Shown here piece by piece: positions 1,930 through 22,282 of a stretch of DNA of 64,000 nt (within the stretch, counting starts at the first letter, position 1; every line of letters begins with the position of its first letter). Below the pieces are notes generated by a model that saw only the letters and a program-made list of their open reading frames with translations, searched no databases and was not told the DNA's origin. The stretch lies in contig OZ176054.1 in the NCBI GenBank assembly GCA_964247055.1, forward strand, positions 6,262,001-6,326,000. The letters run 5' to 3'. The position numbers and the translations under genes were made by a program. The DNA comes from Paragordius varius. Lineage: Eukaryota > Animalia > Nematomorpha.

Positions 1930-3196
1930 TAGAATAATGTTTTTTAAAAATCTAAAATTTTACAATTATATGACAGGGGGATTGAAGTTAATAATGTGAA
2001 AGGGAAATTTTGCCGTATTTTCAGCTAAATAAAATGCGAGATTCAAATCATTTTATTTATTAATTAATCATTTAATCAAAAAATGGTTTATTTTTTGGTC
2101 GCTGTATATCAATTGCTTTAGTAAAAACTTTTTAAAAAATACATAGTAAACATCTAACCAACTAGTCATATATTTATCAATATTACAGATATGGACTCAT
2201 CTTTATATTCTTAATATATTTCAAATTTTTGTATCTATAAAACATAATTTTATTTATAAAAATTGTCTGTTAGTTTAAATTCGTCCGGATTACATATTTT
2301 ACTGTATACATATATTCGAGACGAATATGTATTAAATTTTTCCCATATTATCTAAAATACCCCCCAAATATTAAATAATGGTGTTCGTTTTATATTTATT
2401 TTTTGTTTTTTAGATTAGATATTTAGTATTAAGCTCTATATAGTATAAAAGAATATGCTATGTTACATCTAGCCCTAGGTCTTCGCGTTAGGAATGCATC
2501 CATACCGTGCGATACAGTCAAATAAATTCGAAAATATATTTATCATTCTTATAAATTATAAATAATTTTTTAGTAAAAAAATTGGAATTAAATTTTGAGT
2601 AGTTTGTATTTTTCAATTAAAAGTCTATCCGTTTTTATATTTTGGCTTGAAATAGCGTTTTACTAAGCTAAAGATATTTTAAACAATACAATTTAAAGAT
2701 ATTTGTTATTAAAAATTTGCAACTACAATAGGGCAATTCTTGAACCATTTTTAGAATAAATATAACTAAAAAATTTATAAATCCTTTAAATTTTATTTTT
2801 GTAGTCGGAAATATGGAATATACTATAAAATTACAAAAAACTTCAAAGCTATTAAGTCTTAAATTTTTATACCGTATCTAAAATAACTAGTAATGATCAG
2901 TTTAATATTATAGAAAATCAATTGCTGTTAAGTGTATAAACCTGATGTCATTTTTAGCCATATATATATAGCTGCTATTTTATTTCATTAGTTATCCCTG
3001 TTGTCCATAAAAAGATGATGTTTTTGTTTTTCTTAGTCTTGAAAATTATTTATTAAGCATTTATAATAAAAGTTCCCATTAAAATATATATTTATTTTAT
3101 AATTATATATTTAAACGCTTCGTTCCCACATTATTATTGTTAATTAGGTTTAATCGAGTCTTTTCCCAGAATACATAGCGTGTTGATTTAATATAC

Positions 3197-6100
3197 CGCC
3201 CTTACATCGTAAGTGGTAAGAGGTGGCGTGGTGGTCGGAATAACTATATATGCGCAAAAATTGTTAATCAAAATATAGTAAAACCATAATATTAAATAAA
3301 TTTATGTTAATTAGATGTTTTATTTAAACAAACCTAAAAACTATATTAGGATACTTTTAGGAAGTTCGCACATTTTGTCAAAAAAGGATGAGATAATTTT
3401 ATATCTTGTGTAAAATAACATTTGAAAAATGATAAAATTAAGGTAATCAAAATATCTTAACAAATAAATAAATAAGAACAATATAAAATTTGTAATGTAT
3501 ATAAACCCTTATCGCATCGTTTTATCATAATTTCGGCTATGTGAGCGATTCCACTAATGGAATAAAAACCGCGAACTTCACTGACAAATGCATGGTTGTA
3601 TCTTTTTTCTGGCTTTTTGTCACCTGTGCTTATCGAAACATAAGTTGGCATTTGTCTTATAGTAGCCTAAAACATTTGAACGAAATTTAGGGTTTTAAGT
3701 TACTCAGATATTTATCAATTAAAACAAATCAAATGACTTACATTTTTGTGGTTGGTAATGGGCGAGACGCATTTTAACCGATTTGACATATCGTTTTTGA
3801 AATAAAAATTGCAAATCAATAGTAACGCATCTCCTGATGTGTTTTGTTTGGCAACTAACTATACAGATAATAAAATATGATAAAAGCAATAGAGTTGGTT
3901 GTGCCGAGCTTTTATGAAAAAATGATTTGGGTCAATATAGATATAAACATGTTAAGGTTGTATTTTGGGCTGATTCTTACTAAAAATGGAATCGATCGGT
4001 TCTAATTAATGAGAACCCTGAATGTCACCACTTATGTAAATAAAGAGTCAAATTTTTGAATATACAAGTTAATCACAAAGCATAATAAAAATATAAGAAT
4101 TTAAACTTATATTTAGTATATAAAATGTGATATTTTAATCTTTTATTTATAACGATTAAAAAAATAATTAGTTTTATTCAATAAAAAATTATTGTTCTTT
4201 TCTGGCTATAAATGACCGCATTAACAGTCCGGCTGTTTCTCTTTTATACCCTGTCAAAGACCTGCGATAACTATTTATTATTAAGATTTCCAATAATTTA
4301 AATGGTCAATTAATCAGTAAATTTTTGGCCTACTGAAAATGGGTAAAGCTACTAATATCAAAAGTCAATTCGATGTAAAAAAATGATGTTTAAATTATCA
4401 GCCGTTGTGACTTAATGATAAATTTGAGAATATATTTTTATTCATATAATCTCAGATTCTATATTTCAGAAAATATTGCTATTATTCATGAAGCTTCTAT
4501 CGAAAAAAATGATTTTTTTATATTTGCTTACTTACCGTTACCTCTATTCAGCAAAAGTAGGAAATAACATGATTTTTAACAAAATAATACAAAAATTCAA
4601 ACATGAAGGAGTGTTTTATTGATTTTTTGACAGTCCGAATCGAAAAAATTAATTAAAGAGTATAATACAATTAACTTACATTACTCGTTACAGTAACGTT
4701 TGTTGTATTAAATATCCTTTGAACAAATACAATTTCATTCAGTGTATACCGATTAACTTTGCTCAAAAGTGTTGTACACTGTGGTTTATTTGGATTGGAG
4801 CATTGAACAGATGTATTATAGATTTCATCCGCTTTCACCGACCATATAAGGTCGCGTTCCCTTCTTTGGATAAATATCTTGTCTGGACTATTAAATAAAT
4901 AAATATTTTATAACTTTATTATTAATATTAATAATATTGGTAATATTTTTTTATAAAAAAACTAATTTTTTTACATATATGAAGGGTAATTGGGAATGTC
5001 CAAAATTTCGCGCATATTATACCAACCAGTTTCAGTTATTTTTTCACATATATCAACCGTTATACCTATAAAAATTAATTTTATGCAATAAAACAAATTA
5101 TTCAAATTTATAATGCTAAAAAATGACAAATACTTGGACATTTTTTTATTATATTTTCGACAATATGATAGTTTCCCTCAATGGTATACGTTCCAGAAAC
5201 GGAGCTTATGAATAAATTTATTAAGTGTTCAGTTCTAGCGTTTCCATTTACTTGTGTTGTAATAGATAAAGCATTCTCTCCTTGTTTTATAGTAATCTAA
5301 GTTGAACATAAGTACTTAAAAAACAATATTGGCCAATTCATATATTTTAATTTTGCACTAATTTTTTTTACTAAACTGGAGACGGGTCTTTACATACTTT
5401 AAAAGATAATTGTTACATTTTTTTCAACGGGGAATTTAATAGCGTGTATAAATACTATTTTACAGAAACCATATATTTTTGTATTACATAATTGGCTGTA
5501 CTAAGTATAATTTGACACTTTTTTACAAAACCCAACTTACATTTTTAGCATCAGTTTTAGGAATATAACATATGGTTGATGTGGTGTCAAAGGTATCCAG
5601 TTTCATGTAACACACTTCTAAATCCAATGATGATTTTAGGTTAAGCTCTCTTAGATAAAACTAAAATATATAATACAGTAAAATGAAATAATAAAGACAA
5701 AACGTAAAAACATAAAGAAAAATATTTTTTCAAAAGATCGCTCTACCTTTTCAAACTTGGTTTTTTGAAATATAATTGACTTGCAAAATAAGAATAGAGA
5801 TGTAAATTGGTAATATATATATATATATATATATATAGGAAAAAATGAAGGTTAAAAATATATGATTGTCTTAAAAAAAAATATTGCCTTAATGTTTTTA
5901 CGTCTTGTTTGTTTTATTTAAATTTTTTAATTTAAAAAAATATACATAATTCTTACATTGCTACTAAAAGTGGTATCCATGACTTTGAAAGCATTTTGAA
6001 CAAAATTTAATTCTCGCATAGCAAGCTTTCGAATAGAACTAACTTCATATTGGCACAAAGCACTAGTGGCATTAGGACATGTGTCAGTAGTTTTTTCAAA

Positions 6101-9100
6101 AATTTCCGGATAGCTAATAGGCCAAATCAAATTTCCTTCATATGTTCGTTTAATATATACTGTTTCTGGCCTAAAATTTTTGTAATGATTTACGGGTATT
6201 AAATATCTAAGGAGAAATATATATAAATCCTTATATTATGTGATACATTTATTAATATTAATTTTTGTGTCCGTTGCCTTTTTGGGGCTTAAATTTTTTA
6301 ATAGAATAAAATTGGGTTTCAGAATACTGTACAGTATAAATAAAACTCGAAAATAACAAAAAGCCATAAAAATGCGCCAATTAGCTGATTCTATGACTTA
6401 TTATTTTAGGGTTTCGGTAAAATTCGATATGTTAAAATTATAACAAGCTTGGTAAACAAATATATATTTGAGTGAAGTTATTTTAAAACCTTTTATGCAG
6501 TCAATATTTAAGATTATATTTTAGACGCCACAATTTTTGACATGCAGACCTATTGTTAGTGTACTGTTATTTTAGAGCAGAATTTTTTAAAAAATTTAAG
6601 TATTGTTAAAAAAAATTGTTAAAAGTTAAAGTTTGGATCTGTCATGCAAAATACCCATTATTAAAAATTAAAAAATCCATAAAATATGATAATTAAAAAA
6701 TTCCATATTAACAAACGGTATAGATTAAATGCAATCTTTCAACATTTAACCCACATATATAAAATACACGGTTTAGTGTAAATTCTCGTTTTTTATTAAT
6801 GGGTTAAGACTTAAATTGTATTTAGTAACTACAATATCTTATGACACTCGCACCAGCCAGGAAAAGAGAAATTATGGAGTTTTGTTAACTCTGTCACACA
6901 TATGCAAATGCATATGTATTAGAGGGGCCTAAATACTCATCAATAAGTGGTTATTTTAAAAGTTTAAGGTTTTCATTCTCTATCTTTAAATATATATATA
7001 TATATATATATATTAAATTGGTAGGCAAATATAATTAATATGTTGCGCTAGGTACCGTTCGAACTACGTTGTCGTACCGCCCAGCACAAAAAGGCTATTT
7101 TGCATCTTTTTATAAATTAATGTTATTAGTGCTTTGCACGGCCTTTATTTGTAAAGTTAACTTGTTTACCCCCATTTTAATTTTTAAAAGCACAATTATT
7201 GAATTTGGCATCAAGTCGTTGAGCCGACTCAAATTCGCTTCGGCCATGCTAATAAGCCAATTAGCTCAATTCTTCCTATTTTTTAAGCTATATATATTTT
7301 TCTCAAAGGTTTCTCAATTTTTTACTATAAGATATTTCAGCCAGACCTTTGAACCAATTAAGTCGGCTCATTTACCAAAATGCCTGCCTGACTTTTTATT
7401 CTTATGGCCCTTAGTTTCTCATTAAATACTGAAATACATTAATTATAATAACAAACATGTATAATGGATATTTGTCGTCCTGCATCAAATTCTTCATATT
7501 GTATGAACCGGAGACTGGTATTAGGTTGCATAAATCTATTTCTGGACGGGCTAAATATTTTAATATATAAAAACATTCACTAAATTAAATATTATGGTTA
7601 ATAAAAACAATTTTGTATTTTCCGAATTTTTTATAATCATTTAAAACATGTAATTATACATTTTCCAAATTAATTTGTTAAACAGGTTTTTATCAGCTTG
7701 TAAAAGATATTCATGTGTAAAAGCATTTTATGGCGTAAAAACCGCTAGGCTACACTGAATCAATTTTTATGGTTGAAGTTTTTACTTATTAATGTGTGCT
7801 GTCACTTAAACCTACCATGAATATATAAGTCATAAAATAAATGGCAATAATACCACCTTTTCTGTAAATTAATTTTAACCTTAATATTGTGTATGAAAAT
7901 ACCTTTTTAAAGCGCTTTAATATCTAATCAGTATTAAAATAAGATTGGTACCTAATAAATACCTGTAGTGGTAAACGATGTAGTTGTTGGTAAAAAAGTT
8001 GGAATCGGCGTATCTTAATAATAAGATAATTTTATTAATTTACTTAATTGACTGAACAATATATTTAATAATTAAAAACTTTACTTTCATCTTCACAATC
8101 GGTAAAGATTATCTTAAATTTATGTCTATTTCCTGAGACTTCAAAGCTTCCAAATAAGTAAGTAACAAAAGCATTTGCGTACAATTCCGAATTTATTAAA
8201 CCGTCTTGTCCATATTCTTCCACGTGAATATTTATATTATCTTGACTGAGTTTGTTCTGTTTTTTAAAAAAAATTTACTAATTTGTGATCCAAAGATCTG
8301 GTTATTAAAATATGAGCCAGGACTTGGCTTTGTATTTATACATTTTAGACTAGGGTTGTCTAACATGTGGCCCTTCAAGGCATTATATACTGCCCGCGAA
8401 AACTTTGAAAATATATAATTTGAAAAAATATGCCCACAAAATCTTAGTAATATATATATTTCTTAAATAAATTTTCTGAATAAGCATATAAGAAGCAACG
8501 AACTCAAAAAAAAATTACAAATGTGTTTTGCATTTTACCGTCATATGTTTGAATATATAATATTATGAATGATATATATTTTAAATGCGGCCCACGAAGC
8601 TATTTGTGGTCAACACCCCTGTTTTACTTATTGTTTAAAAAAACGCTAAATGTATTTAGCAAACGAATATCTGATTAGCAAAACCCTACCATTCTTGCAT
8701 TGGCAGATGGAATCAAACAGATGGCACTAGCAGTGTCGCCTTGAAATTGTATTCGGCAAAATTCGAGATGATTTGCCTCGTAAGGGGAATCAAATGATAC
8801 CACCAGCTATTAACAAATTTTAAACATGTTTTTTATTATAAATATCATAAGTAATTTAAAAATCAATGATCAATAAGCCTTGCATTTGACGGAAAAAAAA
8901 ATATAGTAAAAGGAGTCAAAATAGATACATTCCTAGTTTTTTTACTGTGGTATAAGAAATTAGATATATTTCATACATTACTGCAACTAACAAACTGTTT
9001 TAAAGATTTACATTACTATCCACACTGTAGTTCCCAACAAGAGAATTAGATCGGGTTCTTTGATACTTGTTTTGTAACCAAACTATTTCATCTTGCCTAT

Positions 9101-12100
9101 TTTCATTTATTCCAGCTTCTTGTGGGATGTCGGTACTTTTACTGAATATTTCATCTCCGTTGACAACCCATATAATGCGTTCGCCTTTACGTTCAAGCTC
9201 AATTTCGTTAGGGCTATATTAATATCAATAAATTATTTAATAAATTGGGAAAAAATAGTTGACATGAATAGGGAAATGGAAAAAAGATAATAAAAAAAAT
9301 TTGAACCAAAATTAATCAAGATATTACATAAAATCAGGTATGCTTTCGTCGAGTACATCACGAATTTTATAGAGTCCTGATGAAGTTACCAATTCACATA
9401 TATCTGGGAGGGCTAGAGATAAGGTTTGAAAACAATTTTATATAAATTGCTCAAAATGGATTTTCAAAAAAAATAATTCAACAAATTATACGTGCTGGAG
9501 TTGTGGTTAAGATTTCAGTGGTATAGCTATCACCCGTTGCTATGATTAATATATATGCCATTATTTTGATTTTCATACTTTATTTAAGGTATTTTGCATT
9601 TATATAAAAAAAAATTCCCAGTCACGAAGATTTTCAAATGCGATTGGCTGGGAAAATGTTTTTACTATTAACTGGGTTTTGATAGATTAAGAAAACGTAA
9701 TTTTTTAATGAAAAATGGGTATACTTGGGTTTGTTGAATAGGTGGGAGTAGGGGTGGTAGAGGTTAACGGTGTTGTAGTATCTAACGAAAAGGTAGTTTT
9801 ATAAATTTGTGAACACCAAAAAATGGGAATAATTAATAAAGTTTACATGGCCAGCAATCTTCCAGCAAAATTTTAAAGTTGTGTTTTCCCTTTTTTACGA
9901 TTTTGAAATCTCCATAAATCAAAGTGATAAATTGATCTGATAAGATTCGATCTTCATTTCCAGTTGTGCTCACGATGGCTACTCCTTCAGTTTTTTGTTC
10001 TATCATACTCTAATTAAATGTTTAATGTTTATATAAGGTAAAATATTTAAATAATTGATAATTTTTTAATGATTGCTATATGTAAACCAGACTATTCCCT
10101 GATACATTTGGAATAAAGCAGATAACTTTGGGATCGTTTGTTGGTTTAAGATCTACAACGCACAATTCTATGGGAGAGATAAGTGTGTCATTTACAATTA
10201 TTTTCAGCTAAATACAATGGGGAATGATTATAAAAAAATTATAAATGCAAAATAACGTAATTATCAACTTAACCGTCAGCGTAAAATATATTGTGTTTTA
10301 ACTCAAATATACTAACGATATTTTAAAAAGTTTTGCCAAACACTTATTTTATTTTATTTTGATCCTTCTTAAAGTTGTGCTTTCAGGATTAATTCTTAAT
10401 AATAGAAATTTCCATTGATTCAAAGTTTCTGAAATTTTTTTTATATCATCCAAATCCTATTTTAAATTACCCTGCATTCATTTTTAACAACCAATTTTAA
10501 GCGGTGTAAGGTTTATTGCCTCCCATCTTGCAAAGACCAAAATAGTTAATGACATGCCAAATGGTTAAAAAACAATGGCTAAAACTAAATTTTATATACT
10601 TACTATATAATTAATTTATAATGACGTTTGTGATAAAAAAAAATAAAAATTACATCGCTTTCAATAACCGTGTCATTATGCATATCTTGATAATTATTGT
10701 TTTCATTTTGAGTGGAAAATCTTTTAAGCCAAACTATTTTATTGACTTGAGTAGAGGGTATGCTACTTATATTAACACTAACAGGCAAATATATATCTTC
10801 CCCTGAAACAGGCCAATAAACTAAATCATGGTCCCTTTGGAGGTATACTTCATCCTCACTAAAAATATTTTTATATGTATAATTTCAATAAAAGTTAAAT
10901 TTTATCAAGATTTCAGAAAATATACAAAATTTCCGGAACTGGATTAATAAAAGATCGAATTTTGTAGAAACCGGATACAGTAGCTGTAATACATATTTCT
11001 TTGTGATCTAAAATAATATATGATAAATAAAATATTTATAGCAAAATTTATTATGTTAACTTTGACACAAAAAATTATGTTACCGACAAAAATGGTGGAT
11101 ATTTGAGCCGTAGAGGTTGTTGGAACTTAAAATATTTGTAAATTAAGGATAGAAAAACATATTTATGTCAATTATTTCTGATTCTTACCCTGAACAGTCG
11201 TATTAAATCCCATAGCTGATGTTGTTTGAGTAATTACTAAACATGATATAAAAGATATTTTAGCGTATATATGGTAACAAACAGCTAAAGCCTAATTTTG
11301 CCATCCACAAATGGGTAAATTATCAAATATTCCCAGAACTTTATAAAAAAAAGGGGGTGCAATTTTACTATAATTAATTAAATAATTGATTAATATTGCA
11401 GTTTATACCTTGTGCGGTATAAGTTGGCGTTGGAGTGGTAGAGGTTAAAGGTGTTGTCGTATCTAATTTATAAGCATATGTCTCTCAAAATTACATTTAA
11501 GCTAAGTTTTTAAAATTGATAAGTTAAATTTTTCTCAAAAATTTATAATAAATTTTAGACATTTTTGACACTTATAAGAAATTATGATAAATAAAAGTTT
11601 GTTGATTCGCATAAAAACTTACATGGCCAACAATCCTCCAACAATATCTTAAATGTGTGCTTCCCTTGTTTGACAATCTTGAAATCGCCGTAAATAAATA
11701 CAATGAATTGATCGGACAAGATCTTTTCCTGATTGCCATTTGAGCTCATAATGGTGACTCCTTCAGATTTTTGTTCGATCGAACTCTAACATATGTATAT
11801 ATATATATATATATATAATATATATATATGTTATATTCTATTTGCTAATAAAATTTTTATCATGATTAGGAATTAAAAAGATCAAAATGTATAAATTTAA
11901 TACGTCTTATGTTTTTGTCAGACAAATTATAAGAAATCGTTTCAAATAGTTTGGATCAAAATATTTCATACATTTCTTCCTAACCTAGTTATTTATTAAA
12001 TTGTATGACCACTGTCCGTAAAAGGAGGTTGTGGATGATGTCTCTTAAAATTTTTGAATTTATTACTTAAAATATAGAGGTTTAATGCCCCAGAAGCACT

Positions 12101-15100
12101 TATTACTTATAATTTACTTGACTTCCAGCAACAGTAGGGATAAAACAGACAATGGAGGGCTGGTTCGTGGATTTAAGATCAACTACACATAATTCGATTG
12201 GTGACACCAAAGTTTCGTTGACAATCATTTTTAGCTGTATGATAAAATATATAAAAATAATTGACGATAATTTAGAAAATTATTTGGTAACATACCTATC
12301 GCAAATTTAGTAATTTACAATTTAAAAATTTGATTATATGATTACTATCAAAGATACATAAATTGGGGCCAAATTTTATTTATTATATACCATTTCCCAG
12401 TCTAAATAAACGTTTTCCCAGTCAATCGAAACATTTTCCCAATCAATCGAAACGTTTTCCCAGCCAATCGAAACATTTTCCCAGTCAATCGAAACGTATT
12501 CCCAATCAATCGAAACATTTTCCCAGTCAATAGAAACATTTTCCCAATCAATAAAAACGTTTTCCCAGTCAATAAAAACGGTTTTATTTTTGATGATAAA
12601 ATATCAAAACAGGAATATAAAAATAACTTTAAATCATTATCAGCGTAATATAGGATATTATTTTGCATAAAAACACAGTTATTGAATGAAAATTTTTCCA
12701 ATTTTATTCCAGTGCACAATCATTAATGACTTATTCTTTAAAGGTTGCATTTGAGATGTTTTTAAGATAATGTTTTTTATTTTATCGATGGTGCGCAGTA
12801 ATATTTGCAGAACGCTTTACAACTGTTTTTAAATATGTTAAGTTTATCGTTAAAAATACTGTCGGAAAAAACATCTAAATAAAAAATATTTTTTTGAATG
12901 TTTTTGATTTAAAAATATTTAATAAAATAGGATATTTGATTAAACAAGGGTGTCCAACTAAATGCTTCTCGGGGCGCTGTAACTCAAAACATAGTTCAGC
13001 ATTCGAAAATATGGGTATTCACATAATTTTTCGATTTGACATATTAAAATACAATCACATTATAATAATTTTTTTAATTCGCTACCAATTTAATAGGCTC
13101 ATTCAGAATAACTGCGTAGGAATTATGAATATTGCTAAGATTTTGGGGCCATATTTTTGCATATAAATTTCCTAATTTTTCGCGAACCGCATTAAGATAC
13201 TCGGAAGGCTAGGCCCCTGATGAACCAAATGATAAATATTATATTAGGGTAAAATTTATGTTTAAAATCCAATTTGAAGTGTTAAATGACCTTTGAGAGA
13301 AAAATGGTATATTTTAATAAATTTTATTATTTCATTCGTAAATATAGATTTTATATGTTATCCGCACATATTAGCGAACCACCGATTAAATAAAAAATAT
13401 TATCTTAAAAACATCTCAAATTCCAAAAATATAACCTTTAAAGAATAAGTCATTAATGATTATGCACTGTAAACTTGGAAAATTTGTCCTTCAATAATTG
13501 TTTTTATATTAAAATAATATCCAATATTACGCTGATAATGATTTAAAGTTTTTTTATATTCCTGTTTTGATATTTTATCATCAAAAATAAAACCGTTTTT
13601 ATTGACTGGGAAAACGTTTTTATTGATTGGGAAAATGTTTCTATTGACTGGGAAAATGTTTCGATTGATTGGGAATACGTTTCGATTGACTGGGAAAATG
13701 TTTCGATTGACTGGGAAAACGTTTCGATTGACTGGGAAAACGTTTCGATTGATTGGGAAAATGTTTCGATTGACTGGGAAAACGTTTCGATTGATTGGGA
13801 AAATGTTTCGATTGACTGGGAAAACGTTTATTTAGACTGGGAAATGGTATATTTAATCTGTTTACAAACTACAATAATTTACAGAATGCATTTGCACTTT
13901 TTATTGACTGGTAATGGCTACGAATGATGCATTGATAAGTGGTTAGACTTGGTTTTTATATTTTTACTGTATTAATTATTAATTTTGTCTTATTGAGCAA
14001 ATCCTTTAACGCCTATTTTCACGGGATTTTCTCCTTTCTTTTCGAGGAAATTGCAATAGTAACGCAAAATTTTTTTCACATCAATGTTTTTAAAGGATAT
14101 ACTTTATTTTAGGATTTGAGGCAAAAATGTATGAAATCAGTTTTATTTTAATTATATTAATGGTGAATAAAAATCACAATGGTTTATTCTGAATAATTTT
14201 CCATAAATATTATATAAAATGACGTTTAATGGTCAAGTCAAAAGTTAAAAAAAAAGGTTGAATGTAGTTTATATAAAAACGTTTGCCAAATTTTTAATCA
14301 TTCCTACTAATTAAAATTACTTAAGATTTTGTGAAATTATTATTTTGCCCTCGCATGTTTATCACAAGAAAGAGGTTTGATTATATTTCATTTTTAATTG
14401 TAAAAGTATTATTAATATTAATACATCGCTTTCAATAACGGTATTATTATAGGTATCATTGTAATTGTTATTATCATAAGTGGTGGAAAATCGTTTTAAC
14501 CAAATGATCTGATCAACTTGAGTGGATGAAACTTTGCTTATGTTTTGGAATTGTCCATTTTTAACAGGGAGATATATATCTTCGCCTGACACTGGCCAAT
14601 ATACTAAATCTCGATCTTGGTCTCGTTGCAAATAAATTTCATCCTCACTGTATAATACAGTGTAAAAATTGAAATTATACAAATAAAGTCGTAAAAAGTA
14701 AAAGACAGATATTTTTTAAAAGACCATCATGTTTTGGATTTTTATAATAACTCATCATTTTAAGGCGCGAATTAAGAAATAGAAATGTAAATTGTTAAAA
14801 CACTCAATCATATAAATACAAATTTGGGGAAAATAAAGTAAAGTAAAGTATGGTTGTTATTTGAAAAAAATTTGTTTTTAGTTTTCAAGCTTAATCTGTA
14901 AATTTTATCTTCACTATATATTATTATTTATAAATTGTTGATAAAAGTAAATTCATTTATCGTTTTATTATATAATTTTATGTGTAAGATTCGGACTCTT
15001 GCCAACTCAAGAAGCTTTGTTATAAATTATTATTTTTTTTTTCATAATAAAAGTTCAACGGCAAAAGATTTACAATATATCGGGTACAGGGTTTATGAAA

Positions 15101-18100
15101 TCGCGAATTCTATAGAAGCCAGATACAGTAGCTGTTATGCATATTTCTCTATGATCTATTAATGTATGTCACATTGATTATATATTATTACAGTAAAAAT
15201 AATGCTTTGTGGTAAAATTATTTAAATTAATACCAATGAAAATAGATGTAGTCTTCATGGTTGGTGTTGTTGTAACTATGCGTGAAAATAGGTAAGTTTT
15301 TTATATAAATTAATAGTTTTAGCAGGAAATTGGTTCTTTGAACATTTCTTAAATAATTTGACTATCTCTATTGAAAAATAATCTATTTTAAACACGGGGT
15401 TATACTTTTTTCAATTTTAATTACGTTTTACTAATGTGACGGTGGAATGAGCATGCCCCTTAAGAAAGCAATGGTTTTTTGGGTTTTTTATCAATTGGGT
15501 TTAAGGTTTGTACAGTTCTTAATTTTTATGGAGGATACTCTTTTACGCTGCTAATTTAATTTATTTAATAAAAATGACAATTAGTGATATAACAAAAGAG
15601 TAAATACTAGCGATTTTTAAATATTTTTAAATTTGACGATACTGGGACTTATATGAAATAGTGATTTACAATTCCATTACTGATTTTTGTTTTCATTACC
15701 ATCAAATTATGTATACATTTTCGTTAAACTTTTTTATTGGGAAAATTTTAAATGGTAATTATTTTCTATTTAAAAATTATAACGGGCTTAATTAACTATA
15801 TTAATTATATACTTTGGGAAGGATCGCTTGTTGTGGTTTCTAAAATAAATAAATGTATTTTAGATAATTCAATATATCATTCATATAATTAAACTTTTTT
15901 AAAAAATACCCCCACAAGCTGCAATAAAAAAATTGAGTTGATTTTGGGATCCTTGGCATTTAAACAAGAGAGGATTAGCATATACTAAGAAAGATGAATA
16001 GTGATTCAGAGTTGTGCCGTTTTTGTAATTTATTTGAACCATATTTGAGTTTTGAATTATATTTTTCTATATGTAAAATAAAAGGAATGTCATAAGCAAC
16101 ATTAATAATATTTGGATGAGTTAATTATTTTAAAACTTAAGAAATAAAAAGAATCCAAAAATATTTTACAATGAGTTTGGCATCATCAATATATGGACAT
16201 TTTTTGATAAGTTTGTTGTAATTTTCAAGGGTAAACATACAAAATGTTTTGGAAAAAATGGTTGCATCTTTCGTGTTTTGACATATCATCTGTAAAAAAT
16301 TGAAGAAATATAATTGAAAACTCTTTTATTTTTGCCTTAAAATGAAACTTTTATTTATATTCACAATAAAATACGGTTAAAGTCTCATTTTCCCTTTTTG
16401 ATTAAAGGGTAAAGACTTAACTTGTATCAAGACTTGGAAAACTTTAACACTTGCCTGTCCAAGACTGATAATGATGATGGAAAAATTGGGTAGTTTTAGG
16501 TTTCCAACCCCCCCTCCCATTCCACACACACACACACAAAATATATGAGTCCGGCGCCCTACCTATATACTCTATTTCTAATATCACAAGCACGTAATTA
16601 AAGGTTTTAAACCAATCTTTTATCCCTTGTTTTTCTATAATGTTTATGGAGAAGAATTTTTTAAATAATAACATATTTACATTAGAGCTGACGGACATTG
16701 CCATTTCATATTTGGTACGGAGCCACATATATTGTAACATAAGCATGGAGTCCCTTTTGTGGTCTCGGGACAAAGTCATATCCAATCGATCATAAGAGGC
16801 GTATATCATTTCCTCTGCTGTTCGCAACAATTCGACGGTTCCTCTTTTAAAATTCAAAAATTAGTTATGGTTTATAATGAAATATAAAAATAATTCAAAA
16901 CTACAAAGTTATACCATACAGAAGCTATAATTAACAATGTCAACGTATCAAAAAATAGATATCTAGTGGTAAAAACACAACTTTCTGACATCCGATAGGT
17001 ATAATAAGGCCTTAAAAAAGCTCTTCACTTAAAAAATTTAACGGAAAAATAAAAAATTCTTAATATATCACCGCCCTCATTCAGCCTCCCCAAACATTGT
17101 GGTTACTCTATTCCTGAGGTTTTAAATGTACTCATAATCATTCCACAAATCTTTACCAAGCATATTTAAAACAGTTTTTAAACGTTGTTTAAAACAACCC
17201 AAAACAACTCTATATGAATGTAAATGCACTTAATATCTACCACTCTACCTGACTAATTAACTTAAATGATATATGTTATATCGAATTATAAAAATTAGAG
17301 CATTCCACCAATTCTGAAAAACGAATACAAATGGTTATATTCACGTAAAAATGGATGGGCAACATAATATTTTTCTATTATTGATTAGTTTTGTAGCTGT
17401 ATGCTAACAAAGGGGTGTTTTTCCATATCTTTGTTTAATTATTGAAAAACATTTCAATAAGTTTAAAAATATGTAACCGAAATCAGAAACATTTGACCAA
17501 TAAATATAAAGGGAACCATTTTTGGCAATTATTTGATTTCGCAAAAGGATTACTTTGCTGCTGGAATATTCTCCTTATCTAACAAAAGTTGAATATCGTA
17601 ACTGCCATTGTAGTGGATGAAGTTACACACATCTAAATTAACATATTTTGTAAAAACATTCAAGCTTCAGGGCATTTATAAATTTAAAGAAGAATTACAC
17701 TTTTATCCATAATGATGGCTAATTCCCATAAAATGTTTAGGTTCTAATATTCAATTATAATCATTCATTTTTATTTATTTTACGCAGATTAACAAGTGTA
17801 ATGCGCACCCCCTCAGAAGCTTTTAAAACACACGTGTATTTGTTAGTAATACTTTCGATTAAGTAAATAAATCATAATTTTAACCGGTGGACACTTCATA
17901 AATGCAGTACCAGAAAAGTTGAGCAATTATTAGCAAAATAAAATATTTGGTACATTAAAATGAAAGGTCAATCGTTGAAGCTTTGCGGGTTGCATTTTTG
18001 ACTTAAAAATCTGGCAGGCCGCATTTATATATGGTGACATTCACAAATAATATATTAAAACATTAGAATGTATAATGCCAATACAATATAACAATTTTTA

Positions 18101-21100
18101 TTAGTTTTTGTCATTTGGGTGGACTTATTTATAAAAATTTGTTTTAGAAATATCAATTTTACTAAGATGGATTCCAATTTTTTTTGCGGGTCGCACAAAA
18201 GTCTCGAAGGGCACTGGTTTAAAATATATTATTAGTAAGTAACAAATAATCAAAATTTGATAAGATTAGAATAAATTTAGATTATTTTAAATATTTTATC
18301 ATTTAATAGCGTTATAAAGATATATTGTAAGTTTTTCTGTTGCCTTATAAGTGTTTCAGTCATGGTCATGAATGCATTTCGGTCAGAATTTAATTTAAAT
18401 ACAATAATATGGAGTTTATAAATTTGTATTTTATAATTGTTACATTTGAGATATTTATATAATACATATATTTTAATCTTACCAATTGGCTCTTTATATC
18501 GATAATAAATAAATTTAAAGAAATTATTATGATATTTGATATAGTCTTCAAACGATATCAAAAGTGAAATACTTTGAGTAGGAATAGTTTCAATGGTTGT
18601 CGTTGGTACAGTTGAAGTTATGTCTTCAGTGCTCACACCTTACAATATATATATATATAATAAAATTTTTAAATCCAAAAATTTTCAGTGTAATACAATA
18701 TTTTAATTTATTAAAGCTTGTTTAAAAAATATAATAAACCTAAATTTTATTAACACAGTGAAAATTGATAATTGAAACGACAAAATGTAAAAACTAAAAG
18801 ACAAATATTTTTCATTTAAAAACAACCATATTATTTCAACCTTGAATATTTTTATTTTAACTTATCGATTTGGATTGCAATAAAAAATTATATAAATTAT
18901 TAACAAATTCAATCACATATTTTTTATTCCTCATCTGGGTTGTATAGAAATATCATGGTTTGAAAATGTATGGCAGTCTTTATATAAAAAATATTTTTTC
19001 TATGAGTTCTTAAGTTTTGTAACCCTATTTTAATTACTTTAATTAAATTATCCATACTGTGCATTTTCAACTCACCAACCATATTAAAATTTAATTAATA
19101 ATCGATAAAAAATAAATCAACTTAAAAATATTAACTTAAAGTAGGAATGGTTTCTATGGTAGTTGTCGGTGCGGTTGATGTAATTTCTTCTGTACTTACT
19201 ACATTAAAATATTTTAAATATGAGTTTACATAAAAACAACTGAATCAAATTATGCGAAATTTTCTTTTAGTATATATTTTTTCATTTTGAATTTTTTTGA
19301 AACTTATAATTTAATAATTTACTTTGGGTAGGGATGGTATCAATAGTGGTTGTTGGTAGGGTAGTTGTGATATCCTCTACACTGACTAGAAATTATACAA
19401 GATTAATTTCTTCATAATATAAGGTTGGTTTTAGGTTTATTGTAGCTGCATATTTAGCCATTATAAAAATTCAATTAATTTATTTGTCTCTTAAAGATAA
19501 TTTATATTACTGATTGCTTTTTTCTGCAATCTATAATTTAAAATTCTAGCCCTCAATTATTTCTATATATAACAAACGGTTATTATGCATATAGAATTGC
19601 TTTAAAAAAAGATGCCATTGCGAAATGTTTTACTCCATCATGTTTTCAATGCTTTCAAATGTAAGGTTATTAAAATCGGAAATTAATAATGGAATGAAAC
19701 TTTCAATACCATCAATTATAATTTTAATGCGCGAATAAAATGTAGTTAAGTTTATTTACAGATTCGCAAACATAATTAAAAAACACGGATTTTAAACGAT
19801 ATCGCATTCAAGGGCATGCATTCAATCAGTTTTTTATAAATTTAGTTTATTTTTGTAAAATTTATTTTTACCAATTCGTATTAAACTTGCGATACCTCAA
19901 TTGAATAAATATAAAAATTAAAAAGTTCGCTACATAAAACTAAAAGGACCATCAATACACAGACAATTTACAATATGGAAATTTAATGGGATTTAATTAT
20001 TTAATTATTACTCATAGTTGGGATTGTTTCAATTGTTGTGGGTGGTAGGGTTGATGTAATTTCGCTTGTTTCTAAAGGCGGGAAATAATGGAAAATGATA
20101 AATAGTTGTTAAAATTCACCTACAATAAGGCATTCATATATTTAATTCCCTGCAAATAATAGTTATTTCATATTAATTAGATGACATTTAGCCAATGTGA
20201 TTTAAAAATTGATCTATCTGAAAACACATAAATAAATTAATTAAAAAACACCAAACCCATAAGATTGGGTCAGACCGATTCTATATACATATTCATGATC
20301 ACGACTGCTTTACAAAATAACCTATTAGAAAGTTTAGGCATATGTTTTTTACATATTCCAAAATTCTGGAAAAATTTAAAATATATGTTAAAATTGGTTA
20401 AGGAAAATTCATATATCTTAACATACGGAATTTTAATAAAATAATACTGTAAAATGGCGACATCGAACGCAATAAGATTATCACTAAAACATTTGTGCGA
20501 TTTTATATATTCTAGCCATCATTATCCTTATGGACTTATGTACACTTTTAACAAACAAATCAGTTTTTTACATGAAATTAAATACAAATTAAAATATTTT
20601 TTCATGCATGAAACCATGTGATTGAAAGCGGCAAGATATTCAAGGATAGTATTATTTTATTATATACTATAAATATATTTAAAAAATATGTTTCCTTTTA
20701 GTAATTATTAATCTTTTTCTTTGTTTTGTAGAGTTTTTATTTTATTTGTATGCTAAGTATGTAATTTAAAGAGTAACATAATTCTTAAGTCATCAAAAAT
20801 CATTGTTATACAGATCTCTCTTTTTTTGTTTTTTTTCTCTACTCCTTGGTTCCTAATTATTTTATTTTTATTAGCCTAGCCATAATTTCTTTATATTTTT
20901 CCTTTATGATTGCCAGACAGAGTAAAATATCAATATTTATAATTTATCCAAATTAACAACATTTATAAAGATTACTCTTTAATTTTAATTATTCTAGATA
21001 TTTATTTTTTGTAAGAGGGTAAGTGAGAGGGAAGGCAATGGCAAACCACCCTCGTTTATTACTGCCAAAAAATAGTTTTACTATATGAACTTAACAAGAC

Positions 21101-22282
21101 TTTTCAAAGTTGGATGCTGGAACGTACGTTCCTTAACATCAACCAAACAGGTGATAATTGAAAAGGAAATGGAAAGATTGAACATAGATATACTGGGTCT
21201 AACGGAAACCAAGCAAAAAGGTAGCGCGAAAATACAAAACGAAAATTATACATTGTTAAGATCGGGGAGAGATGACCAGAAATCTGAAGGCGTTGCAGTA
21301 TTAATAAAAAACAAATTAAATAAAAGTCTCATTAGTTATACACCATATACACCCAGAATCATGAGTATTAGGCTGAATGCCAAGCCACTTAAATTTAAAT
21401 ACATAGTAGTCTATGCTCCTACGTCAAACGCTCCCAAAGAAGACATAGAGGACTTTTATGCAACGTTGCAAATAGTTTTGGATGAAACGAAGAAAGGAGA
21501 TATGATTATCATAGGAGGGGATTGGAACAACAAAGTTGGTAGAGGTAGAGTAGATCAAATAGTCGGGCCATATGGATTGGGAGAACGAAATGAGGCCGGG
21601 GAAGCACTGATCAATTTTTGTCAAGAAAATGAGATGATGATAACCAACACATGGTTTCCACAACACAATAGGAGGTTATACACATGGACAAACGCTTCTA
21701 ATAACTTAAACCCTAAGTTTATTGTATGTAAAATGCAAATGACATATATTGTAAAGGTTTGACCTGCAATTTTTTTCAGTATCAAAATTTTAAGAAAATT
21801 ATTTTATCTCACCCTTAAACAATTCAAATCCACCCTCCAACAATTCAAATTCACCCTTGAACAATTCAAATTCACCCTAAAAATAAATTATGTGTTTTTT
21901 AACTAATATAACTCATTATTAATATGAAATATATGCTTATGGTATAGTTTATTATTTTTTCAGTAATATTTTAATTTAAAACAAAATTTTTATTTTTTAA
22001 AAATATATAAAATATAGGTAATTTTTAATCTTAAAAAACATATAATTTATTTGAGGGTGAATTTGAATCGTTCGAGGGTGAATTTGAATTGTTGGTGAAA
22101 TAGAATTATAAATGGTATATCTTTATATATAATTTTAACCATAATTGGAAAAAAAATAGAATATATAAACTCCCATATCCAAAGAATTTTATTATCTTGA
22201 TTATATCATAAGAATTACCTTGAGAAGTTACCAGAATGGCTTGTAAAATATGGAAAATGCATATCACAAAATACTTTGTCAT
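3197..22282 (-). CDS. Large secreted/surface glycoprotein: signal peptide, Thr-rich stalk, six tandem 4-Cys domains with Thr/Pro linkers (at least 1383 aa; last exon unresolved)
   Basis: GT-AG exons with continuous phase and no stop found. Signal exon 22219-22282 (MTKYFVICIFHILQAILVTSQ). Stalk exons 20012-20071, 19323-19385, 19136-19198, 18573-18638. R1: 17554-17632, 16681-16843, 16170-16289, 15910-16066. Linkers 15813-15839, 15234-15275. R2: 15074-15155, 14425-14647, 12118-12234, 11623-11785. Linkers 11409-11462, 11189-11236, 11084-11125. R3: 10926-11007, 10654-10858, 10088-10207, 9847-10009. Linkers 9725-9781, 9492-9539. R4: 9328-9412, 9012-9213, 8690-8806, 8085-8256. Linker 7963-8013. R5: 7457-7550, 5957-6170, 5541-5660, 5134-5296. 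R6: 4975-5065, 4680-4887, 3742-3858, 3507-3666. Linker 3197-3243. Total 4149 nt. Several listed ORFs (3457, 5927, 10603, 14362, 16444, 18277) overlap these exons. Confidence 0.8.
8351..8621. mobile_element. hAT-Charlie-like MITE in an intron
   Basis: Ends TAGGGTTGTCTAACATGTGGCCC ... TGCGGCCCAC ... GGTCAACACCCCTG resemble CAGGGGTGTCCAA/GCGGCCC Charlie-type ends; the 8-bp TSD is not clean. Confidence 0.5.
12385..13852. mobile_element. Foldback-type element: ~430-490-bp inverted arms, each with a 21-bp tandem array
   Basis: Left arm ~12385-12815 is the reverse complement of right arm ~13358-13852, both ending in ATATACCATTTCCCAGTCTAAATAAACG. The unit CRTTTTCCCARTCAATCGAAA occurs 8 times on the left and 11 times on the right. 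Confidence 0.85.
21010..21710 (+). mobile_element. RTE-clade LINE fragment: end of 5' UTR plus APE endonuclease domain, 3'-truncated
   Basis: ORF 21085-21762 has the endonuclease motifs GCWNVRSL, LGLTETK, YAPT, GGDWN and TNTWFPQHNRRLYTW. Similarity stops at about 21700 and there is no RT domain. It is preceded by the RTE-typical GAAGGCAATGGCAAACCACC motif. Confidence 0.85.
21027..21066 (+). promoter_or_regulatory. Putative RTE 5' UTR pseudoknot just upstream of the ATG
   Basis: GAGGG (21027-31) can pair with CCCTC (21049-53), and GGCA (21034-37) with TGCC (21063-66), in crossed order. The same arrangement occurs in the BovB/RTE GGAGAAGGCAATGGCA..CTCC..TTGCC motif. Confidence 0.5.
21805..22103. 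mobile_element. Small foldback/MITE with 21-bp units in inverted arms
   Basis: AACAATTCAAATTCACCCTYR occurs 3 times at ~21818-21880 and is inverted twice at ~22050-22095. The inverted match continues through AAATAAATTATRTGTTTTTTAA. Confidence 0.65.

Follow-up and report, generated by a model that had tools for sequence, protein, structure and literature searches.

We analyzed a 64,000-nucleotide stretch of the genome of the horsehair worm Paragordius varius (Nematomorpha; assembly GCA_964247055.1, contig OZ176054.1, positions 6,262,001 to 6,326,000 of the forward strand), referred to here as the window, in which all positions are counted from the first letter. The minus strand between 22282 and 3188 probably carries an intact 38-exon protein-coding gene for a secreted protein of approximately 1,385 residues with six copies of a four-cysteine domain, which belongs to a family so far known only from hairworms. 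Each domain copy is encoded by a module of four exons, referred to as exons a to d and numbered by module (exons 1a to 6d).

A hidden gene on the minus strand

An original prediction, made by a model from the letters of the window alone, had proposed a hidden gene of about 38 exons at this locus, of which the track of open reading frames (ORFs) showed only scraps. Both points were borne out. Sites for AG and GT compatible with the predicted phases were listed for each exon class on the minus strand, and the positions that correspond in the protein alignment have a strong acceptor, mostly ttAG, and a GTA donor in every module. The same listing of splice sites and phases yielded the exon with the start codon, the four stalk exons, eight Thr/Pro linker mini-exons, exons 1c and 6c, and a possible last exon. 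The rebuilt reading frame comprises 4,158 nucleotides (nt) including the stop codon, or 1,385 codons, with no internal stop in the 38 joined exons and GT-AG borders at all 37 introns (74 canonical splice dinucleotides). Introns range from 63 to 2,190 nt (median, 205 nt), and GC content is 0.357 in exons versus 0.245 in introns, with approximately 25% for the whole window. Every module has the phases 1-2-0-0-1, and all linker and stalk exons are of phase 1-1. The ORF list for 3.0 to 22.5 kb holds only scraps of all this, several of which are alike on the minus strand. The continuous phase that had been predicted is indeed unbroken, although over 4,158 rather than 4,149 nt; the 9-nt gap equals the spacing of two in-phase acceptors at exon 4a (9412 or 9403). 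In exon a of modules 2 to 5, a second AG of the same phase lies 9 nt downstream of the first (15155/15146, 11007/10998, 9412/9403, and 7550/7541), and at each, two isoforms differing by three residues are possible.

Self-BLAST of the minus-strand stop-to-stop pieces gave clusters of six pieces for exon a, three and two for exon b, three and two for exon d, and two for exon c, with a further cluster of Thr-rich pieces. When each exon was left out of the profile used to find it, all six a exons ranked first among the 4,111 six-frame pieces of the window, as did the b and d exons of modules 2 to 6. The motifs of the original prediction occur on the minus strand only and inside the interval assigned to the gene, although as strict regular expressions they fit only some copies.

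At the protein level, modules 2 and 3 share 78% identity; their DNA similarity is confined to exons, with introns that cannot be aligned. By Nei-Gojobori counting, the proportion of nonsynonymous differences (pN) between them is 0.14 (0.08 to 0.17) versus a saturated proportion of synonymous differences (pS) of 0.74 to 0.81, and the same codon is used at 38 of 90 conserved residues. The low pN against a saturated pS points to purifying selection on the protein. The pS values themselves (15155 to 11623 compared with 11007 to 9847) are at or above full saturation and higher than expected for an AT-biased third position, which may reflect plain saturation and a crude method.

Relatives in Gordionus and age of the family

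An exhaustive comparison of a 63-position profile, built from the six b exons, with 1.84 billion representative proteins returned exactly two matches, each a protein of the hairworm Gordionus sp. m RMFG-2023: XP_065322587.1 (P0001), named "mucin-22-like," with an E value of 4e-10, and CAK9294258.1 (P0002), with an E value of 1e-6, each with three matched stretches. A word search from these two proteins added three further Gordionus proteins (P0003, P0004 [LOC135929787], and P0005), and in all five, segments a to d follow one another directly. The four conserved cysteines are also present in most Gordionus copies. When CAK9294258.1 was mapped on its locus (L001), its introns proved to occupy the same places in the alignment and to repeat the phases 2, 0, 0, and 1. 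Conversely, a domain profile built from Gordionus proteins only was compared with the pieces of the window, and the top 18 places were taken by 18 predicted exons in colinear order (best E value, 1e-9). No relatives were found outside Gordionus, either in the exhaustive exon-b search or with a full-domain profile in a word-indexed, length-limited search, so that by sequence the family appears to be restricted to hairworms as far as searched. The original prediction of a lineage-specific protein is therefore sustained at the level of hairworms, but the domain is carried by at least five Gordionus proteins as well.

Window exons are 20 to 55% identical to the Gordionus proteins. Module 4 shares 38 to 43% identity with one Gordionus domain type versus 28% with its sister modules, which places the diversification of the domains before the split of the two genera. 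Unannotated exons that lie upstream of the P0005 gene of Gordionus are 47 to 55% identical to exons a and b of modules 2 and 3. When the six modules were compared with the Gordionus loci for one-to-one orthology, modules 2 and 3 alone had a clear partner (positions 3344 to 3636 of the P0005 locus, L003), with the others ambiguous, and no DNA similarity was detected between the window and L001, the only locus compared. In the Gordionus genome, two members lie approximately 40 kb apart at 90.55 to 90.65 Mb of OX940783.2, and another (P0005) lies at 73.45 Mb.

The Gordionus gene models are incomplete or fragmentary, and their protein names are automatic. Within L001, a conserved two-cysteine exon c resembling that of P0003 is present at 21156 to 21275, where the third domain of the CAK9294258.1 gene has a 2,287-nt "intron" separating exon b from exon d. 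The deposited protein lacks this exon, which was either overlooked in the annotation or, being of phase 0-0, is skipped. Upstream of P0005, at 3344 to 10108 of L003 (approximately 73.45 Mb), at least two further sets of a, b, and d exons lie on the same strand where no gene has been called, the first being the closest relative of window modules 2 and 3. Judging from these exons, the public 324-residue P0005 model probably represents just the final part of a much longer multimodule gene.

Exon composition of the gene

All exons lie on the minus strand and are described here in the order of transcription. Exon 1 (22219 to 22282) contains the ATG and the predicted signal peptide, is hydrophobic in translation, and ends in phase 1 at the donor gtaatt. 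It is followed by four Thr-rich stalk exons (20012 to 20071, 19323 to 19385, 19136 to 19198, and 18573 to 18638), each called from self-BLAST and splice sites. Module 1 opens with exon 1a (17554 to 17632; phase 1-2), which holds the first cysteine and was found by self-BLAST and as the top-ranking leave-one-out match (E value, 0.0015). The weakly supported exon 1b (16681 to 16843; phase 2-0) is the best nontraining match of the b profile (E value, 0.045), and the similarly weak exon 1c (16170 to 16289; phase 0-0) is the sole in-phase two-cysteine exon with good splice sites. Exon 1d (15910 to 16066; phase 0-1), with the last cysteine, is marginal, scoring an E value of 0.24 with the Gordionus-only profile, above all nonexons. 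Two Thr-rich linker mini-exons (15813 to 15839 and 15234 to 15275), predicted from splice sites and phase, lead to module 2.

Modules 2 and 3 share the same pattern of evidence. Exons 2a (15074 to 15155), 2b (14425 to 14647), 2c (12118 to 12234; two cysteines), and 2d (11623 to 11785), and likewise exons 3a (10926 to 11007), 3b (10654 to 10858), 3c (10088 to 10207), and 3d (9847 to 10009), were all identified by self-BLAST, splice sites, and alignment, with leave-one-out profiles adding to the a, b, and d exons and the Gordionus-only profile to the b, c, and d exons. Between the two modules lie a Thr/Pro-rich linker (11409 to 11462), which was detected by self-BLAST and is conserved at the DNA level with the linker at 9725 to 9781, and two linkers called from splice sites and phase (11189 to 11236 and 11084 to 11125). 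Module 3 is followed by the Thr/Pro-rich linker at 9725 to 9781 (self-BLAST and splice sites) and by a linker at 9492 to 9539, which was called from its splice sites, has an in-frame ATG at 9576, and is a possible alternative first exon.

In module 4, exon 4a (9328 to 9412; alternative acceptor at 9403) was supported by motif, splice sites, alignment, leave-one-out, and the Gordionus-only profile, and exon 4c (8690 to 8806) by the same evidence except for leave-one-out. Exons 4b (9012 to 9213) and 4d (8085 to 8256) were recovered by leave-one-out and by the Gordionus-only profile, with E values of 3.6e-5 and 1e-9, respectively. After a Thr/Pro-rich linker (7963 to 8013; splice sites and phase), module 5 comprises exons 5a (7457 to 7550), 5b (5957 to 6170), 5c (5541 to 5660), and 5d (5134 to 5296). 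All four were supported by splice sites, alignment, and leave-one-out, to which a motif adds for 5a and 5c, self-BLAST for 5b, and the Gordionus-only profile for 5d. Modules 5 and 6 adjoin without a linker exon, with only a 68-nt intron between 5d and 6a. Exons 6a (4975 to 5065), 6b (4680 to 4887), and 6d (3507 to 3666) were supported by splice sites, alignment, leave-one-out, and the Gordionus-only profile, and 6a by its motif as well, whereas exon 6c (3742 to 3858) fails leave-one-out and was called from splice sites and the Gordionus-only profile (E value, 0.011). The tentative last exon (3188 to 3243), from the splice-site listing alone, would encode a Thr/Pro-rich tail and the stop; alternatively, the gene may end by read-through of exon 6d to a stop at 3457.

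Two of the introns hold repetitive elements. Inside the 2,147-nt first intron and on the opposite strand, a 225-residue ORF (21085 to 21762, plus strand) matches Pfam Exo_endo_phos (E value, 1e-11); by this apurinic/apyrimidinic endonuclease domain, it is assigned to a retrotransposon fragment of the long interspersed nuclear element type. Between this ORF and exon 1 are 21-bp tandem repeats (21809 to 21882 and 22053 to 22093). The longest intron (2b to 2c; 2,190 nt) contains a foldback-type element at 12385 to 13860, with two inverted arms of approximately 240 to 470 nt, up to 95% complementary and approximately 0.9 kb apart, made of 21-bp tandem repeat units.

Features of the predicted protein

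The predicted protein consists of a signal peptide, four Thr-rich stalk exons of approximately 20 residues each, and six domains of approximately 180 to 200 residues joined by Thr/Pro mini-exons. The product of exon 1 (MTK, a 15-residue hydrophobic core, and VTS) looks by inspection like a standard signal peptide. This order agrees with the original prediction, in which the modules follow a signal peptide and a Thr-rich stalk and are separated by Thr/Pro linkers: exon 1 is hydrophobic, the four stalk exons are Thr rich with phase 1-1, and eight linker mini-exons are present. The 12 stalk and linker exons are 27 to 66 nt long, encode 195 residues in total (approximately 14% of the protein), and are 63% Thr, Pro, and Ser. 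No hydrophobic C-terminal segment or membrane anchor was seen in the preferred model, which takes 3243 to 3188 as the last exon; the read-through variant of exon 6d would add a hydrophobic tail.

The six domain copies are approximately 20 to 35% identical to one another, except for modules 2 and 3. Invariant residues are C, G, Y, and P in exon a, R and S in exon b, C, C, and P in exon c, and Q and C in exon d. The four invariant cysteines are present in all six modules, with one near the N terminus (exon a), two mid-domain and approximately 14 residues apart (exon c), and one at the C-terminal end, where it is the last conserved residue of exon d. Modules 5 and 6 have an additional pair of cysteines in the variable middle of exon b. 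N-glycosylation sequons had been described as frequent, but the 19 N-x-S/T sites compare with approximately 18 predicted from composition by arithmetic; this lack of enrichment leaves the sequon argument without weight.

Domain identity and fold

The domain could not be matched to a known family, as the original prediction had also stated. Pfam gave nothing above its cutoffs for the window exons (searched per exon), the Gordionus proteins, or single domains, and PDB sequences searched with profiles of the whole domain and of exons b and d gave nothing below an E value of 0.05. A word search with a 117-residue piece around exon 2b had no match, and an ESM Atlas feature search with exon 2b and the second domain of P0003 had no usable match.

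AlphaFold models were made for two Gordionus domains, P0003 residues 27 to 205 (8 alignment rows) and 207 to 385 (33 rows, among which window exons trimmed to their well-aligned cores served as fragment rows). Both models have a short N-terminal helix with the first cysteine, two strand pairs, a low-confidence loop, and then approximately eight strands; each has approximately 10 to 11 strands. The loop corresponds to the length-variable middle of exon b. Invariant cysteines and mostly beta models thus agree with the four-cysteine, beta-rich domain that had been predicted. The AlphaFold and Foldseek comparison proposed with that prediction, run on these two domains, returned no significant fold match: Foldseek against the PDB, an exhaustive VIA-align scan, a second look with VIA, and an ESM-Atlas shape search all stayed within background, with best values of E = 0.03, Z = 5.2, and a template modeling (TM) score of 0.34, whereas the stated tool background for unmatched models is a typical best Z of 7 to 8.

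The original prediction had offered a lipocalin- or calycin-like barrel as a testable idea. By Pfam, Lipocalin_7 gave an E value of 0.039 and 14.3 bits, against a cutoff of 25.4 bits, and a lipocalin barrel has eight strands and a C-terminal helix, whereas our middling-confidence models have approximately 10 to 11 strands and no C-terminal helix. Neither model had a lipocalin or fatty acid-binding protein (FABP) in its 50 best structural matches, so the calycin idea is unsupported.

Weighing the alternatives

Several observations weigh against the model of one intact gene for a secreted six-domain protein. Exons 1b and 1c were missed both by leave-one-out and by the Gordionus-only profile, and what speaks for them is position, phase, splice sites, and cysteine spacing only; because neither profile test recovers them, we fully trust module 1 at exon a only. 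Exon 1a is real and the remainder of the module plausible, so that of the six four-exon modules originally predicted, modules 2 to 6 are solid and module 1 is independently recognizable at exon a only. Profile scores are marginal for exons 1d, 6c, and 2c/3c, the terminal exon (3243 to 3188) is tentative, and the use of each linker exon is predicted. The AlphaFold models reach only middling confidence (predicted local distance difference test scores of 66.8 and 67.5 and predicted TM scores of 0.48 and 0.57 for residues 27 to 205 and 207 to 385, respectively), and glycosylation, disulfide pairing, localization, and binding are all features that we infer. None of the five sequencing runs found to contain the stretch in a 31-mer word search is on record as RNA. 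Finally, the exon opened by the ATG at 9576 offers a second possible start within the gene.

Two of these runs (X4 and X5; kind not recorded; window positions 3400 to 12300) keep 0.21 to 0.23 of the sampled 31-mers, close to the approximately 0.245 that an exon-only copy would keep by arithmetic. The study behind them also yielded the best DNA runs for the stretch, although from a different sample, and X3, labeled as a second organism, keeps 0.31.

Given the second start, the locus could instead have an internal promoter or consist of at least two tandem genes, which we regard as unlikely. Under such an arrangement, gene A would comprise the signal peptide, the stalk, and modules 1 to 3, ending by read-through of the donor at 9725, where the frame of the linker at 9781 to 9725 continues to a stop approximately 20 codons on, and gene B would comprise modules 4 to 6 from ATG 9576. 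The exon from 9576 starts MKIKIMAYILIIATG, which is signal-peptide-like and in frame with the linker at 9539 to 9492, and apart from exon 1 it is alone in 20 kb in being hydrophobic, of phase 1, and opened by an ATG; between approximately 3000 and 23500 on the minus strand, just two such exons with a phase-1 GTA donor exist (22282 to 22219 and 9576 to 9492). In favor, short two-domain proteins with a signal peptide of their own occur in Gordionus, but so do long multidomain members. The stop of gene A and the start of gene B would be only approximately 130 nt apart, chance translation of AT-rich acceptor tracts often gives Ile, Lys, Met, and Tyr, and the single-gene model needs no extra assumption, with every junction in phase 1. 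That the locus is instead a decaying or never-expressed relic is very improbable: module 1 is indeed very diverged, yet 38 exons without a stop or frameshift, 74 canonical splice dinucleotides, and strong purifying selection between modules are not what a pseudogene would show.

With a single secreted protein as the preferred reading, the nature of the domain and its deployment can be weighed. A very diverged carbohydrate-binding beta-sandwich of the galectin, ConA-like, or GH32 C-terminal type, which would make the protein a multivalent lectin, is a possibility that we hold as doubtful. Domain size and strand count are compatible with it, and weak matches recur over model residues of approximately 47 to 170 in both models, including galectin carbohydrate recognition domains (Foldseek E value of approximately 0.03), the GH32 beta-sandwich (Z = 4.3 to 4.6), M2AP (Z = 4.0 to 4.7), PRYSPRY (Z = 4.5), LEC-6 (Z = 3.8), and VP8* (Z = 3.4 to 3.8). 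All of these scores (Z of at most 4.7; TM score of 0.15 to 0.3) are nevertheless below the tool background, the models are of middling confidence, and Pfam Gal-bind_lectin, Laminin_G, and SPRY gave no match at E values up to 1. A galectin, GH32-C, M2AP, or SPRY-type sandwich is thus a weak lead from the models and not a result. A ligand-carrying lipocalin- or calycin-like barrel is scarcely credible and largely refuted, since its hints are all subthreshold (Lipocalin_7 as above, and liver FABP chains at an E value of 0.35 in the comparison of the domain profile with the PDB). Exon a does carry SGxY where lipocalins carry GxW, but GxW itself is missing from five of the six copies. The exact GxW motif had been described as absent; a GxW-like motif is present in module 6 only. 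As to deployment, the protein might be a host-interaction factor released into the insect hemocoel for immune evasion, masking, or manipulation rather than part of a structural matrix, which we consider possible but the less likely case. Secreted, lineage-restricted, divergent multicopy domains are typical of parasite surface and secreted antigens, and the protein here has a predicted signal peptide, hairworm-restricted and divergent domains in multiple copies, and a hypervariable loop; almost none of the words occur in the runs guessed to be RNA for the species label, a result that stage-restricted expression could account for. Conservation of 38 to 43% between genera together with purifying selection is, however, unlike fast arms-race evolution.

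Proposed function and comparison with known systems

If the preferred model holds, the protein would enter the secretory pathway, and its Thr/Pro linkers would be O-glycosylated into stiff, hydrated, protease-resistant spacers. In each domain, a disulfide between the first and last cysteines would probably tie the N and C termini together, with the two middle cysteines stapling a hairpin; this pairing is a guess from the cysteine positions in the models. The six globular domains may act as separate binding modules, each with a hypervariable loop in exon b, and the whole could form a multivalent glycoprotein outside the cells, as part of a surface coat, a cyst wall, an egg string, or a cuticle-associated matrix. 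We propose secretion, O-glycan spacers, and independent binding domains because these are established for mucin-type linkers and disulfide-bonded extracellular modules. Modules and linkers all have phase-1 borders, so that duplication of an exon or a module could lengthen the array with the frame kept.

The closest counterparts are the Gordionus proteins, which share the approximately 180-residue four-cysteine domain, the colinear a-b-c-d order, intron positions and phases, Ser/Thr-rich linkers, and, in P0003, a typical signal peptide, which is followed directly by two domains. They differ in belonging to another genus and in having two to at least four domains versus six in the window gene; some are secreted proteins with two copies of the domain, and others are longer and mucin-like. 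Like mucins, the window gene encodes a stalk and linkers whose Thr, Pro, and Ser content would suit dense O-glycosylation, but none of the Pfam domains of mucins (VWD, CysD, cystine knot, or SEA) was found in the window exons or the Gordionus proteins. Insect intestinal mucins and peritrophins and Toxocara TES-120 are secreted glycoproteins that alternate small disulfide domains with Ser/Thr/Pro mucin stretches and form coats or matrices. Their domains are short, six-cysteine, and modeled in Pfam (CBM14, approximately 60 residues; SXC/ShK, approximately 36 residues), whereas the window domain has approximately 180 residues, four cysteines, and no Pfam match. The cutting of Thr-rich spacers into 27- to 66-nt exons of phase 1-1 recalls schistosome micro-exon genes, but the mini-exons here are merely spacers, and the bulk of the protein is a folded domain encoded by asymmetric exons. 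Galectin and ConA-like lectins resemble the domain in size, all-beta character, and weak recurring structural matches, but the window domain lacks a significant score, a sequence signature, or a Pfam match to them.

Significance for hairworm biology

Few animal phyla have been studied as little as the horsehair worms, and to our knowledge, next to nothing is known of the molecules that they secrete as they grow within insects and steer their hosts to water. In the literature searched, the one paper with both "hairworm" and "mucin" concerns an ant host's response to a tapeworm parasite. The principle of secreted proteins with mucin spacers and disulfide-bonded domains is well known and not new. 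What the locus adds is that Nematomorpha possess an extracellular domain family of their own, without a Pfam model or recognizable fold, that was built by textbook phase-1 modularity. It also illustrates how large secreted genes escape ORF-based views and are captured poorly in Gordionus, the one annotated hairworm genome. The exact exon coordinates and the cross-genus alignment provide domains that can be expressed, localized, and solved. It is a more speculative idea, and one that we consider rather improbable on present evidence, that the four-cysteine module represents a new extracellular fold present in Nematomorpha alone. The six divergent copies, each with its hypervariable exon-b loop, would then form a multivalent binder that the parasite deploys in its insect host, for instance as a coat cloaked in glycans and binding hemolymph or immune factors of the host. 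If true, it would be the first candidate molecular interface of hairworm parasitism.

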